A DNA stretch of 64,000 bases from Rebecca billardiae RCC1528 (taxonomy: Eukaryota; Protista; Haptophyta): the NCBI GenBank assembly GCA_965240325.2, contig OZ251227.1, forward strand, positions 868,001 through 932,000. The letters are read 5' to 3'. The stretch's first letter is position 1, and each line of letters starts with the position of its first letter. This document shows, in pieces, positions 44,939 to 51,800 of this stretch. The notes under the pieces were generated by a model. The model ran no database searches. It was not told the DNA's origin and saw nothing but the letters and a program-made list of their open reading frames with translations. Made by a program: the position numbers and the translations under genes.

Positions 44939-46605
44939 ATGATAGGACAGGGTGATGCAGGCCCAGGTGTTGCTGGTGCGGCAGCAGCAGCGCCAATGCA
45001 GGGCTATCAATACAGCCATGCTGACATCTCGTATGCATACTGCAATGTTGGGGGAGCAGGTGGGGCTGACCCCTCTGTCCGGCGGGACGACATCGCCGCT
45101 TGGATTCGAGCAGTGGGGACACCTGATATTGTCTTTTTGGTGGAGACCCAAATGCCTGCGCACCAGGTAGTGCGGTGGTCCAAGTCGTTCCCGGAGTACA
45201 CGGTACATGCAGAGCACGCCCGCGACAGGCGCAAGGGCGAAAAAGGGGCCAGGGCAGGGTGTGCCATCCTGGTACGCAAAGCACACGTGGGTGCACCCAA
45301 ATCGCTCCACCTCAACAGTGTGTGCAGAGGCAGGGAAATACTATACCCAGAGCTGGCAGGGCACATCATTTCTGGTGAAATCACGCTCTGCAGGGGCAAT
45401 GGGCAGGCTGTCCCCATGTGGGTGTGCTGCTTCTACAACCCGCACGATGAGGAGCGGCAGCACTTGCTGCTCCCACACATAGTCAACCACCTTCGGACAG
45501 GCACAGGCATAGGCCTTCCCACAGCTGGCAACATGAGGACTCATGCTGTGCACGTAGCCAGGCATGCTGCCAGGCTGCAATTGGTCGCATGTGATGGAAA
45601 CTGGCACATGCACGACAGCAACGCAGGGGAGGGGGCTACTCCCAAGGTAGTGTTCCGCACATACATGGCAGACGCTGACCACCTCTTCAACCAAATACCC
45701 AGCACCACACGATGGGACACGCTCGAAAGGCCCACATTCATCACTGCACACAGGGAGGACGGCAACGGGGCAGATCGCTCTGTGATTGACTACATATTCT
45801 CCAACATGGACACAGTTGGGCACACCGGACACATGGACATATCGGAAAAGGCCACCCTGCGAATGCCAGGAGCACATGTTCCAATATATGGCCGGATTCA
45901 CTCGGTGGCACTGCGCGGCGCCGCTGCAGTACTGGCCTCACCTGTGCAACCTCCCAGGCACATACGCGTAGACCTGGGAAAGACGTCGCCTGACTGGAAT
46001 AAAGCCAAACAGCTACTTGCGATGTGGATGGAGGGCCTGCCACGGCACATTGCGGACTTTGCCGAGGCTCCAGTGCCGGCACATATGCTGGTGCAACCTT
46101 CGCTGGTGACGACAGCAGCCACTGCGCTGACAACGCTGAGACACCTCACCACACTGGCCACCAGGGACATGGCAACTGCACTGGAGCAACCCAGTGTATA
46201 TGACGGACAGCCCGACACGCCCCTGAAGATCAGACCAACCACAGCGGGCGCAGCAGCCGGTCAACACAAATCCAAGGCAGATGCTGCCTCTGCTGCGCTA
46301 CATGCAGGCGATATTCTGGCTAACAGAGCAGCTGCTGGGCTGCCAGCTGGTCCAGCAGTGCGCAGAGCAGTGCGCAGGTACGAGCGAACCTGGGGCACTG
46401 GAGCTGCGCAATCCCAGCACTGGATACAAGTGGCAATGGGGCCGCACGGACAGGTGCCGGTAGGGCCATTTCTGTCCCACCAGCGCTGGAGACAAATCGT
46501 GCAGCAGCAATGCAGGACGAGCCGCGCGCAAGTGAAAGCTGTGTGGCAGCAGCAGGCAGAGGAACAAAAGAGGGTGTGGTTCGCCAAAGTCAAGGTTGAG
46601 ACCAA
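44939..46605 (+). CDS. Retrotransposon polyprotein, N-terminal part: APE-type endonuclease (first ATG ~44996)
   Basis: YCNVGG, PDIVFLVET, GCAILVRK, CFYNP, ACDGNWH, PTF, SVIDYIF, GAHVPI. Confidence 0.88.
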
Positions 46606-48867: not shown

Positions 48868-51800
48868 ACCAAAAAGAACTCGCATAAATTGCGTGTCATG
48901 GTGTATGCCAAGGACCCCATCACACTGCCGACCATCGTCAGAAGGAGCGATGGGGCACTGGCCACCAGCGTTGACGATGTGAAATCGGAGTACAGGGGGC
49001 ACTACCAGGGCCTCCTGGAGCGACAATACACTCGGCCAGGGGGCAGGCCTCCTTGGCACGCTGGAGGTCGCATGTGGCACGACATTAGGGCGGCATGGCA
49101 TACCGATCAGGGGGACGCATATGTCACCGCCCTCGGAACGCCACCCACCCCCGCGCAAATACGGCACATCATCACATCTGAGGTGGGAGGCAACTCGGCA
49201 CCTGGTCCAGATGGCATACAGTACAATGTACTCAAGCTCTTGGAAGGCCACCATGCCGAGCGCGACGAGCCGGTACTGCCAAGCGGCACGCGCACACACA
49301 GGCAGCTCGCTGCACAACAGACTGGTGCCCAGCAGGGGGCAGCCAGGGGACAGGGGGCAGGGCACCCTGGTCCGATCGCCACTATTATATCTAATCTCTG
49401 TGCAGTCATGTACGCGACAGGGACTCTTCTGGACGGACTCCAGCAAGGGGAGGTTGTCTCACTACACAAGCAAGGTGATATGCACGTGCTCGGGAATTAC
49501 AGGGGCATAACACTCAACAGTGTGGTATACAAAATCATGGCAAGACACCAAAACAACGTCATGCAAGCTGCGTCCGACAGGCTCAGGCTAATCGAGCCGG
49601 AACAGGCTGCCAGCAGAGAGGGTGGGCAAGTGGTACAGCAAGTCGCTGTCTTTGCCAACGTGGTGGCCGATGCACACCGTTCCCGGCGCACGCTGTTTTG
49701 TGCACTGATGGACATTCAAAAAGCCTTCGACACTGTGCCATACCAAGGCATTGAGGATGGCTTCCGCAGCCATGGGTACCCAGCCATGTTTTATACCCTC
49801 ATGCGCTCCTTGGGAGAGGGGCATGATGTGGTGGTGAGGACGCCATACTGGCCCACTGATAGTGTACGCTTACGGTGTGGCACGAAGCAAGGTGGCCCTG
49901 CCAGCTCCACTAAGTTCTGCCTGTTCATCAACATGTTCCTCAGGTACCTGAAGAGCAGGCATGGTGGGTACCATGTACAGTCCAAATGCAGCTCAGACGA
50001 CGCGGACGCTGCTGCAGGGCAGGTGACAGTGGTGGCCACTGCTATCATGGACGATATCAATTTGTACGCGCACAGCAGAGCAGACATCACAGCCATGATG
50101 CAGGACCTCATCGACTTTTTGTGGTACTATGATATGGAGCCCAACTACCCCAAATCCAAGGTGGCAGTGACGCCCGCAGTGTATGTGCCCCCTGGGCACG
50201 CACAGGTGGACCCAATTCAGGTCATCAACAGGGCAACTGGACAAGCTGCCCTCATAGACACGTTGCAGGATGGCGAATACTTCACGTATGCAGGGGTGGT
50301 GACCAACATTCACCTGGCAACTGACAGGATGTTCGCCAGTCTCAAGGCCAGAGTGGCCAAAGCCGCCGCGCGGGTGCAGGCAGCTGACTGCTGTACCGAG
50401 ACCAAAAAGCTGCTCACTGTGTGGGATGTCACGTCGATATTATTCTACTTCTGCGAGGTGGTTGGCATGTCCAGGAGCAGACTCAACCAGCTGCAGAGCC
50501 TCATGGTGGAGCCAGTGGTCCGGAGTGCTGCCCTGCCAGGGCGCATCGCATACGAGGCAGCGTGCTTTCCTCCCCAGCTACTGGGCCTTGGCCTCATTAA
50601 TCTACATGCGCATCTGGAGAGTATCCAGGCACACGCGTACTACCACTTCCTTGCAGATGACCCACATGGGCTATGTGCGCGCACGTCCATGGCAGCCATG
50701 GGTGCCCTGCAATCTGTCGACCACCCGGCACGGGCGCGGGTCCGCGGCGCCTCTACGTTTGCCTCCACTATAGTCACCGGGAGAAACTCTGTACGACGCA
50801 TGGGGTGGGCACTGCTCCCATCAGAAGTGAACCTCGGCAGCAAGCTGATGCAGCAGCTGGCCCCCTGGCTCGGGATGCTGGCCACAAACCGGACCCACAG
50901 AGCATATACGCGACTCGCAGAAATGCCAGGGGCAGCTGCCCTCCCCTGCTTGGCACCACACGGCCTTCCTGACGCGAACGGAGAGATGCTCAGCCGGATC
51001 GAGCGCTCACTGGTGAACGGTACCCCACACATGTTGTTAGGGGTGCTCATGCAGCAGCCACCAAGACAGATGGTCTCCGCTGCATTCTATGCTGAGCTGA
51101 CCTCACTGCCACATAGATCCCGCCCGGCGGTGATACTGGCAGTGAGGGATATGCTGAGGGCAGTACTGACCGACCAGAGCTGCTACAGATACCTGGGGCA
51201 CGTGCCTGCAGCCAAGCGTACTATCTGTGACCCACCCAATCCCCGCCATCTGCAGGCACTTCCTGTACCTGGCATGCTAATGGTGGCCACAGACGGCTCA
51301 TTCGATGCAGAGAACTGGCAGGCGGCGTGTGCCTTTTCCTTCTTCAGCGGCAACAATTACACTGCCCCTGTGCATGTGTATTGCTCCAAGTTCGAGGGGC
51401 ACCAGGCACCAGGCCCAGCCGAATTCATGGCCATCACCGATGCATTGGTGCAGATAGACCCCACCGCCAACCTGCTGGTGTGCACTGACCTGCAGGAAAT
51501 GGTAAAGGCCGCCGAAATGTGGCAAAACGACCCCTGGGACCGACGGCTGCGGCAGGGGCACCACGCGTACGCCCCATACATCGCCAGGGTCATGAGCCTG
51601 GTGGGCTGGCGCCGCTTGCGGCATGGCAGCACCACTTCATTTGAGCACGTCAAGGCGCACTCTGCTGACGATGCTGCTGCGCGGCACCTCAGCCTCACAC
51701 ACGCCCCAGGGGACCAGCACTGCACTGTCAGCCAACACAGTGTGGCGGCTTTGCGCCAAGCAGGGATGAACCCCAAAACCCTGCTCAACGCATGCAGCGA

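Follow-up and report, generated by a model that had tools for sequence, protein, structure and literature searches.

Within the window, as we call the whole 64,000-nucleotide stretch of DNA analyzed here, a host LINE is interrupted by a small non-coding mobile element in a copy whose four arms alternate in orientation, a structure that we find to be real. The array is best read as a multimer of a small non-coding retroelement that was inserted in a single integrase-type event, and we estimate at roughly 60% the probability that this is a copia-mobilized retroelement with a palindromic repeat whose multimer was inserted once by such an event. The original prediction had proposed a candidate new class of mobile element. 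The array is an unusual variant within a known retroelement kind, the family being TRIM-like, and what is novel at the locus is that all five copies of its terminal repeat (H) are recombinants of a single polarity and that the differences among its arms (A, or A' when inverted) group arms 1 and 3 against arms 2 and 4. The features of the locus are as follows.

44939-46605, plus strand: host LINE, portion of the broken reading frame upstream of the array, with an apurinic-type endonuclease domain
46601-46605, no strand: left target-site duplication ACCAA; the two flank matches share exactly these 5 bp in each of seven paralogous LINE copies
46606-46702, plus strand: H1, a 97-bp imperfect palindrome with a left arm of type X and a right arm of type Y, starting with TG
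46703-47148, plus strand: arm 1 (A), 446 bp, with (TG)6
47149-47245, plus strand: H2, polarity as H1, A>G at the fifth base
47246-47687, minus strand: arm 2 (A'), 442 bp, inverted, with (CA)4
47688-47784, plus strand: H3, identical to H1
47785-48231, plus strand: arm 3 (A), 447 bp, with (TG)6
48232-48328, plus strand: H4, identical to H1
48329-48770, minus strand: arm 4 (A'), 442 bp, inverted, with (CA)4
48771-48867, plus strand: H5, identical to H1, ending with CA
48868-48872, no strand: right target-site duplication ACCAA, with flank matches in the seven paralogous LINE copies
48868-53439, plus strand: host LINE, portion of the broken reading frame downstream of the array, with an RVT_1 reverse transcriptase

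The alternating layout H-A-H-A'-H-A-H-A'-H, with every H in the same polarity, had been predicted from the letters of this stretch, and all five H and four alternately inverted arms were located in the assembly at 46606-48867. The polarity of H is uniform, the copies matching at 100/99% on the plus strand against 87-88% on the minus strand, and four of them are identical, H2 differing by its single A>G. H is an imperfect hairpin (dG of -44.5 kcal/mol, z = -14.2, 0/200 shuffles) whose perfect outer 15 bp form inverted repeats bracketing each arm. In all five copies it is an X/Y recombinant, its left arm coming from one palindrome type and its right arm from another, and this recombinant H is present at no other locus in the genome. 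The period is 1082-1083 bp, and the view that the repeating unit is H-A-H-A', present twice with one further H, is supported. Arms 1 and 3 have (TG)6 and an extra C while arms 2 and 4 have (TG)4; odd and even arms differ only by these two slippage-type indels and share no substitutions. The other differences are eight singletons in the arms and the one in H2, which makes nine between the units and a unit-to-unit divergence of 0.8%. Folding of the 1082-nt unit gives a nicked dumbbell (dG of -747.6 kcal/mol) in which A' meets the 5' hairpin with its 3' end.

The termini of the array are TG..CA and ACCAA stands on each side as a 5-bp duplication. When the element and one ACCAA (2267 bases) are excised, the 588-amino-acid and 1523-amino-acid LINE reading frames rejoin in one frame, and the empty site is found in seven paralogous LINE copies, each with a single ACCAA. 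These features had all been anticipated, including the single ACCAA in other copies of the host LINE. The pattern does resemble a polymerase read of a hairpin-adapter library, and a palindromic chimeric long read or a miscounted repeat would be the corresponding assembly artefact. We give this very little credence: H is repeated in the genome and has separate target duplications at many loci, the two halves of a single LINE enclose the array deep in the contig, with a 5-bp duplication that is clean, and nine positions differ between the units. Nor can H come from a library adapter, a possibility that the original prediction had raised, since it is a repeat dispersed through the genome.

Elsewhere in the same genome the family occurs as H-A-H monomers of ∼644 bp, solo H, older copies, a diverged subfamily and two Ty1/copia chimeras. 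Across the family the terminal repeat H is a palindrome of 96-98 bp bounded by TG..CA, and A is an ∼446-bp body without a gene; the arms match family members only in the genome and no protein family was evident in them. Each family member with readable flanks has a 5-bp duplication. Besides the window array these are the monomers L019 (CAAGG), L018 (CTGAC) and L023 (GTCGT), the solo H L022 (CAGTC) and the 6.36-kb chimera L029 (GGGGC); a second solo H, L024, also has a target duplication, and empty sites were found for the window array and, in a paralogue, for L029. In each monomer the two H are identical and have TG..CA ends. The H of young copies are perfect palindromes, the same at both ends, and fall into three types, set apart by symmetric substitutions and indels, with two-sided changes in 9 of the 44 H stem pairs across the family, a pattern indicating that the palindrome is renewed symmetrically between lineages. 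Inversions are not confined to this locus, as the original prediction had considered they might be: by coordinates, a diverged subfamily at ∼79% (C14, C15, C18, C36 and others) contains many inverted dimers, a mirror-symmetric array and long inverted terminal [H-A] structures. Pattern scans of metagenomes for relatives returned one unrelated palindrome and no relative, and literature searches covering LTRs that are palindromes or hairpins, LTR elements in inverted dimers, and retroelements that snap back turned up no account of such a family.

Judged from these sequences, the best reading of the family is a non-autonomous, TRIM-like retroelement whose terminal repeat is a palindrome and which is mobilized by copia. 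The prediction of a non-coding, hairpin-ended, non-autonomous element using a borrowed LTR-type integrase is supported, and its option of a TRIM with palindromic LTRs fits the monomers, the solo H, the 5-bp duplications and the Ty1/copia chimeras with hallmarks of reverse transcription. TRIMs form solo repeats and tandem arrays of formula TDRx_I(x-1) (PMC6934838). The family shares with them its small size (an ∼644-bp unit), its lack of coding capacity, identical direct TG..CA repeats of ∼100 bp, the 5-bp duplication and solo repeats (PMC6934838), as well as arrays with one repeat more than bodies (here five H and four arms) and, probably, the need for an autonomous LTR element. It differs in that the terminal repeat of H-A-H is a complete, symmetrically renewed palindrome, in that the bodies alternate in orientation, unlike those of known TRIM arrays (PMC6934838), and in that primer-binding site and polypurine tract are missing from their canonical places. 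Since neither a canonical primer-binding site right after the 5' H nor a clear polypurine tract before the 3' H was found, the priming of H-A-H is something we infer.

The candidate partner is an intact and young Ty1/copia family with RVT_2 and rve domains, 329-bp direct LTRs and a 5-bp duplication, of which there are at least 17 copies with 97-100% identity over the internal region (16 of them at 99-100%). Its termini, TGTCAA..TTGACA, are nearly identical to the TGACAA..TTGTCA of the H family. Chimera L029 begins with H-A and 29 nt of H; these are followed by the final 15 nt of the copia LTR, then by the primer-binding site and by gag-pol up to RNase H, and the chimera ends with A' (272 bp) and H; its 3' junction has an 8-nt microhomology (CGAGAAGC) and its inverted ends are 100% identical. 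Chimera L017 begins with H-A and half an H, followed by the 3' part of copia pol, the polypurine tract and the full 3' LTR, beyond which lie the primer-binding site of tRNA sequence and 14 further tRNA bases and then A'-H. The order of LTR, primer-binding site and extra tRNA bases is exclusive to reverse-transcription intermediates, namely plus-strand strong-stop DNA, and for this reason we take the family to be TRIM-like and copia-mobilized. The tRNA-templated primer site recurs in a deleted copia copy (L035) and beside further copia copies. On the basis of the two chimeras, the equal duplication length and the similar 6-bp termini, copia appears to be the helper of the H-A-H family.

TG..CA ends and short duplications also occur in integrase-related DNA transposons. 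H-A-H could accordingly be a fold-back or MITE-like element moved by an integrase-like DDE transposase, the copia pieces being accidental; its termini are also perfect inverted repeats, and the long inverted terminal [H-A] structures of the diverged subfamily would suit such an element. We consider this very improbable. The joining of LTR, tRNA-templated primer site and extra tRNA bases to A' in L017 is impossible from the insertion of a finished copia, the microhomology junctions and 100% identical inverted ends of L029 also speak against it, and no transposase lies between the H ends of any copy examined.

In the copia-mobilized reading, the family unit H-A-H, which has no enzymes of its own, would be reverse transcribed and integrated by the young Ty1/copia. 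A DNA strand ending in hairpin H may snap back and prime itself, or switch template, so that the hairpin terminal repeat would allow inverted dimers, larger arrays and chimeras to form. The array would then consist of an inverted-dimer unit H-A-H-A' placed twice in direct order with a closing H. Its last step would be one of two: a closed H-A-H-A' dumbbell or circle was copied round, or H copies of an inverted dimer underwent unequal exchange. What we infer here is copia as helper, hairpin self-priming as the source of the inversions, and this last step. Simple snap-back predicts a flipped H (+,+,-) and the locus shows +,+,+,+,+, so self-priming alone is insufficient for the array; the extra step might be ligation of a dumbbell, or else template switching or recombination that involved only the outer 15 bp of H, which are perfect. 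The uniform polarity of H and the grouping of the arms fit duplication of an H-A-H-A' unit.

Other routes to this layout were considered and rejected for the locus. Two fold-back doublings predict (TG)6,4,4,6 and an H polarity of +,+,-,-,-, which were not observed, and an ODIRA-type replication-fork error should make the polarity alternate, where it is uniform here; the uniform recombinant H and the arm grouping exclude both. Under end-to-end jumping between templates, or under recombination at the center of the palindrome, perfect X and Y palindromes would alternate, and insertions that were nested or joined at their ends would leave H-H pairs side by side and duplications inside the array.

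For the last step, a chromosomal route is tentatively possible, though we hold it to be rather less than an even bet. Unequal sister-chromatid exchange between H1 and H3 would duplicate the unit in an inserted inverted dimer H-A-H-A'-H, or the start could be a direct dimer with an arm flipped between the 15-bp repeats. TRIM arrays TDRx_I(x-1) are thought to arise by unequal exchange, and five repeats with four bodies agree with that formula (PMC6934838). The single target duplication also agrees, the near-identity of the H copies (H2 having one change) favors exchange, the nine differences between units leave time for a later event, and the recombinant H is found nowhere else, with no sign of movement as an array. 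This route nevertheless still needs a dimer with three H of the same polarity, which snap-back does not give, and without substitutions separating odd from even arms the duplication would have followed almost at once after the inversion.

Less probable as the last step, and in our view unlikely, is copying round a closed dumbbell. An H-A-H cDNA would snap back at its 3' H, copy A and be sealed to the 5' hairpin, and the resulting closed H-A-H-A' molecule of 1083 nt would be copied about twice into an array that then integrates. This is the only simple copying scheme that takes both hairpins from one strand, and it predicts five H of one polarity and differences common to arms 1 and 3 and to arms 2 and 4. 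The two slippage-type indels between odd and even arms are as expected from a single synthesis of A', the unit folds with the 3' end of A' against the 5' hairpin, and hairpin-capped linear DNA replicates into inverted dimers in yeast (PMC4689423). However, exact TG..CA ends with a 5-bp duplication need a linear molecule ending precisely at H, of which rolling-circle copying is not obviously a source, and the 0.8% divergence between units would be wholly post-insertion. The original prediction had proposed about two rounds of such copying; uniform polarity and arm grouping are compatible with it, but unequal exchange gives the same product.

It is also unlikely, if conceivable, that the palindrome (98 nt) is the entire cis-machinery of the element. 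H would then be terminal repeat, integrase site and self-primer of both strands, replacing the tRNA primer site and the polypurine tract; one arm of the palindrome would be recopied from the other in each cycle, and single-stranded cDNA would close into a covalent dumbbell copied round into arrays of a single polarity. If true, this would be parvovirus-like hairpin-primed replication run by the reverse transcriptase and integrase of a retrotransposon. Parvovirus and AAV rolling-hairpin replication is primed by palindromic termini and gives alternating-orientation concatemers joined through a single palindrome. The array is alike in its palindromic termini and alternating bodies joined in this way, and differs in having no Rep/NS1 nickase gene, an LTR-integrase signature and five unflipped H. 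DIRS elements have inverted terminal repeats, a tyrosine recombinase and no target duplication. The H-A ... A'-H chimeras are similarly retroelements between inverted repeats, whereas the H family has 5-bp duplications and TG..CA ends and the only coding partner seen is a copia with rve.

In HIV-1, minus-strand strong-stop DNA primes itself through the TAR hairpin (PMC4668388, referring to Guo et al. 1997), and in the H family a hairpin in the terminal repeat would likewise let nascent cDNA snap back and copy itself into fold-back products. The HIV products are dead ends suppressed by nucleocapsid, whereas those of the H family appear to be integrated and inherited and may belong to the normal cycle. 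In the yeast ODIRA "dog bone" model, short inverted repeats lead to hairpin-capped linear DNA and an inverted dimer that can re-enter the chromosome (PMC4689423). The short inverted repeats, the putative capped linear DNA and the inverted dimers are points of likeness; as we derive from the model, it gives opposite-strand hairpins, alternating polarity and odd numbers of arms, as opposed to uniform polarity and four arms here. Retrozymes are ∼1-kb non-autonomous LTR-type elements that borrow reverse transcriptase and integrase and for which a circular intermediate is proposed (PMC4918200). The H family resembles them in being non-autonomous, of LTR type and apparently reliant on borrowed enzymes, but retrozymes have hammerhead ribozymes in their repeats and direct internal regions. 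An Rfam scan at E values up to 10 detected neither a ribozyme, be it hammerhead, hairpin, HDV-like or another kind, nor any RNA family, and gave only sub-threshold look-alikes of miRNA hairpins.

That scan also bears on the predicted viroid-like RNA, a rod-shaped circular replicon of ∼1083 nt that would have been reverse transcribed and integrated. A rod-like fold and same-polarity hairpins suit it, yet we find it barely credible: besides the missing ribozyme or RNA family, the near-perfect pairing of the arms over ∼446 bp sets the array apart from known viroid-like rods, and a DNA/cDNA life cycle is evident from the genomic monomers (the basic unit elsewhere), the solo H and the chimeras.

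If the copia-mobilized reading holds, a parasite of LTR retrotransposons needs little more than one palindromic repeat, and a terminal-repeat hairpin, a nuisance that retroviruses suppress, becomes a productive route to inverted multimers. The same route would also yield long perfect palindromes and gene-carrying chimeras, one of which carries almost the whole gag-pol between inverted ends. Palindromes of this kind are potent generators of double-stranded RNA and make chromosomes fragile, so the family could have a bearing on how the helper copia is silenced and on how stable the genome of this alga is. Symmetric renewal of the palindrome and uniform polarity together set concrete, testable limits on the replication mechanism.

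A search with ARAGORN found no tRNA in H or the arm ends, and the tRNA-like and A/B-box resemblance there is a visual impression. By eye, the last ∼40 bp of arm 1 (47108-47148) resemble an antisense tRNA 3' end, beginning with TGGCAC and containing GGGATTCGAAC, and this stretch sits 15 bp before the downstream H.

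The assembly sequence holds the array as the original prediction described it, with hairpins, alternating arms, TG..CA termini and a 5-bp target-site duplication, and the observation of an alternately inverted hairpin array is confirmed. Five copies of the hairpin terminal repeat (H) are separated by non-coding arms whose orientation alternates from one to the next (A, then its inverse A'), with a period of 1082-1083 bp.

Features of the array in the window
46601-46605, target-site duplication ACCAA
46606 (start), + strand, H1, 97 bp
between H1 and H2, arm 1 (A), 446 bp
47149 (start), + strand, H2, 97 bp
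between H2 and H3, arm 2 (A'), 442 bp
47688 (start), + strand, H3, 97 bp
between H3 and H4, arm 3 (A), 447 bp
48232 (start), + strand, H4, 97 bp
between H4 and H5, arm 4 (A'), 442 bp
48771 (start), + strand, H5, 97 bp
48868-48872, target-site duplication ACCAA

Four of the five H copies are identical, and H2 carries a single base difference. H is an imperfect palindrome, self-complementary at 88 of 100 aligned positions and predicted to fold with a dG of -44.5 kcal/mol (z = -14), and its polarity is uniform throughout (100/99% on the + strand versus 87-88% on the - strand). When the four arms are aligned in one orientation, 13 columns differ; two events, a (TG)6 versus (TG)4 difference and a C gained or lost in a C-run, split arms 1 and 3 from arms 2 and 4, and all remaining differences are singletons. 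The two array units diverge by 0.8%.

The interrupted host is a LINE with Exo_endo_phos endonuclease and RVT_1 reverse transcriptase domains, 94-98% identical to seven paralogues (2-6% divergence). By our own arithmetic, taking out 2267 bases rejoins it into one reading frame, as had been claimed for excision. The expectation of a single ACCAA in other LINE copies was also borne out: with 600 bp on each side of the insertion as queries, the coordinates of the left and right matches overlap by exactly 5 bp in all seven paralogues, and this overlap corresponds to an uninterrupted site with one ACCAA.

H and A are also present at other loci of the genome.

Monomers and solo repeats at other loci
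L019, H-A-H monomer, duplication CAAGG
L018, H-A-H monomer, duplication CTGAC
L023, older H-A-H monomer, duplication GTCGT
L022, solo H, duplication CAGTC
L024, solo H, putative duplication (4 of 5 bases agree)

Older copies show 80-90% identity, and several are cut off exactly at the palindrome centre, which would follow from nicking, or template switching, at the hairpin tips. Half-H ends or joins at the exact centre lie at L025:4770-4812, L028:3847-3895, L028:4262-4314 and L017:4077-4127. Match coordinates further place a diverged subfamily, ∼79% identical over the first 295 bp of A, at more than 30 positions, many of them inward-facing pairs 0.1-3.3 kb apart; by the same coordinates, contig C14 has six arms in a mirror-symmetric pattern with 96-bp gaps, and contig C15 has the arm pattern + + - -. 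Multimers and inverted dimers are therefore a trait of the family, not unique to this locus in the window. In a shorter variant (L020:3815-4260 and L021:4031-4452), arm position ∼294 is joined straight to the H tail (final ∼31 bp) at a GTCGGC microhomology, and the abundant diverged subfamily probably has this short form since its matches cover only arm positions 1-295. One monomer has 24 bp of the H tail duplicated where the 5' H meets the arm (L018:2952-2975), as from slipped strand transfer.

Outside the window, the H of every young copy is perfectly palindromic and the same at both element ends.

Types of H in young copies
Type X, L017, 96 nt
Type G, L019 and L029, 98 nt
Type Y, L018, 98 nt

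Substitutions and indels mirrored in both arms of H distinguish the types. Among eleven family members, two-sided changes affect 9 of 44 stem pairs and one-sided changes hardly any. Symmetric indels are hard to attribute to selection on independent mutations and suggest that, as the element propagates, one H arm serves as template for its partner or a single template gives rise to all four. The left arm of the window H is of type X and matches the half-H within L017 at 100% identity; the right arm is of type Y. LTR-style replication with U3 and U5 from different parents yields the same recombinant repeat at both ends, and the X/Y recombinant is thus an indirect hint of an LTR-like cycle.

A young Ty1/copia family has RVT_2, rve and SH3-like integrase domains, a primer-binding site starting TGGCGGAGCC, direct 329-bp LTRs (TGTCAAG...TTTGACA) and a 5-bp target-site duplication. 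The family numbers at least 17 copies whose internal regions are 97-100% identical (99-100% in 16 copies), and pieces of it are carried by two copies of the H family.

Order of parts in the two chimeras
L029 (6356 bp, duplication GGGGC), part 1: H, A, 29 nt of H
L029, part 2: last 15 nt of the copia LTR, primer site, gag-pol to the middle of RNase H
L029, part 3: A' (272 bp), H
L017, part 1: H, A, exactly half of H
L017, part 2: 3' part of pol, polypurine tract, complete 3' LTR
L017, part 3: primer site with the tRNA's own sequence, 14 further bases
L017, part 4: A', H

The inverted ends of L029 are identical (100%) across 372 bp, and its pol/A' junction falls within the 8-nt microhomology CGAGAAGC. 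Its empty site is seen in the paralogous sequence L030, which also holds an ordinary copia 59 bp off the equivalent site. The two insertions (L029:7458-8601; L030:1852-1915 and 8592-9692) lie in two copies, 97% identical, of a repeat that is 1.1 kb or longer, and chimera and copia may share a target preference.

The primer site of L017 has two differences from the genomic copia site, and its 14 extra bases fit the T-loop and T-stem. To our knowledge, the order LTR, then tRNA-templated primer site, is found only in plus-strand strong-stop DNA; the chimera must therefore have arisen while reverse transcription was under way in a particle that also contained an H-A template. A truncated copia copy (L035) has such a site and extra tRNA bases at its deletion junction, and the exact 20-mer of the site occurs at seven loci, five adjoining copia copies, so that primer read-through followed by template switching is recurrent in this family. 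In L035:5340-5400 (C5:1473.3 kb), the order is LTR, tRNA-sequence primer site, at least 6 extra tRNA bases and internal deletion junction. Coordinates place further such sites at C12:1579711, C18:393679, C39:308869, C24:406192 and C24:420825; the two on C24, without an adjoining known copia match, may be tRNA genes themselves. Given the chimeras, the common 5-bp duplication and the terminal hexamers, alike but for one position (TGTCAA/TGACAA), this copia or a close relative is the likely helper of the H-A family.

The predicted TRIM-like element with palindromic repeats and a borrowed integrase is accordingly supported by the chimeras, the 5-bp duplications and its likeness to TRIMs in size, identical TG..CA repeats, solo repeats and array formula. 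No primer-binding site or polypurine tract was found at the canonical positions, and the element differs from TRIMs in its palindromic repeat and alternating bodies. The proposed new class is unsupported. A retrozyme or viroid-like RNA, the latter also proposed originally, is rejected because no ribozyme was found in the element, and a DIRS-like identity because it generates target duplications; a DNA transposon is unlikely given the strong-stop hallmarks. The nearest described mechanism is the TAR-dependent self-priming of HIV-1 strong-stop DNA (PMC4668388), and parvoviral rolling-hairpin concatemers resemble the array formally. A limited literature search, with curated repeat libraries outside its scope, returned no account of LTR-type elements whose repeat is fully palindromic and whose inverted multimers are inherited.

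The array fits a direct duplication of the H-A-H-A' unit with every H from one strand. Two rounds of fold-back doubling would instead give (TG)6,4,4,6 and H polarities +,+,-,-,-, the flip arising because a copied hairpin is its complement. Under a replication-fork error the hairpins would come from opposite strands and alternate in polarity (our own derivation from the ODIRA model, PMC4689423), and template jumping at the ends or a crossover in the middle of the palindrome would alternate perfect X and Y palindromes, unlike the window H. The array matches none of these patterns. Live but unproven is a route in which H-A-H cDNA, still single-stranded, folds back on itself, replicates A and is joined to its own 5' hairpin, the dumbbell then being copied round: the unit is predicted to fold exactly as a nicked dumbbell (dG -747.6 kcal/mol), and odd and even arms differ only by slippage-type indels. 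Also fitting is a route that starts from an inverted dimer whose three H point the same way and doubles it by unequal exchange from one H to another, a process accepted as the source of TRIM arrays (PMC6934838); the shared H orientation could come from template switches or recombination in the perfect outer 15 bp of H, which bracket every arm. The divergence between units and that of the host LINE from its paralogues allow either route.

The H2 right arm and start of arm 2 (47197-47290) contain, in the A' direction, a tRNA-gene-like box B (GTTCGAATCC), with a box A (TAGCTCAGTCGG in older copies) ∼52 bp away. This stretch, the H right arm with the adjoining ∼40 bp of the array arm, ends in CCA, recurs in L023:4125-4215 and gave no match to a tRNA model; a Pol III promoter or an origin in strong-stop DNA is only a guess. 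Many family insertions sit in AT-rich microsatellite islands of AT or ATT runs (flanks of L017, L022, L025, L026 and L028), surrounded by very GC-rich genome.
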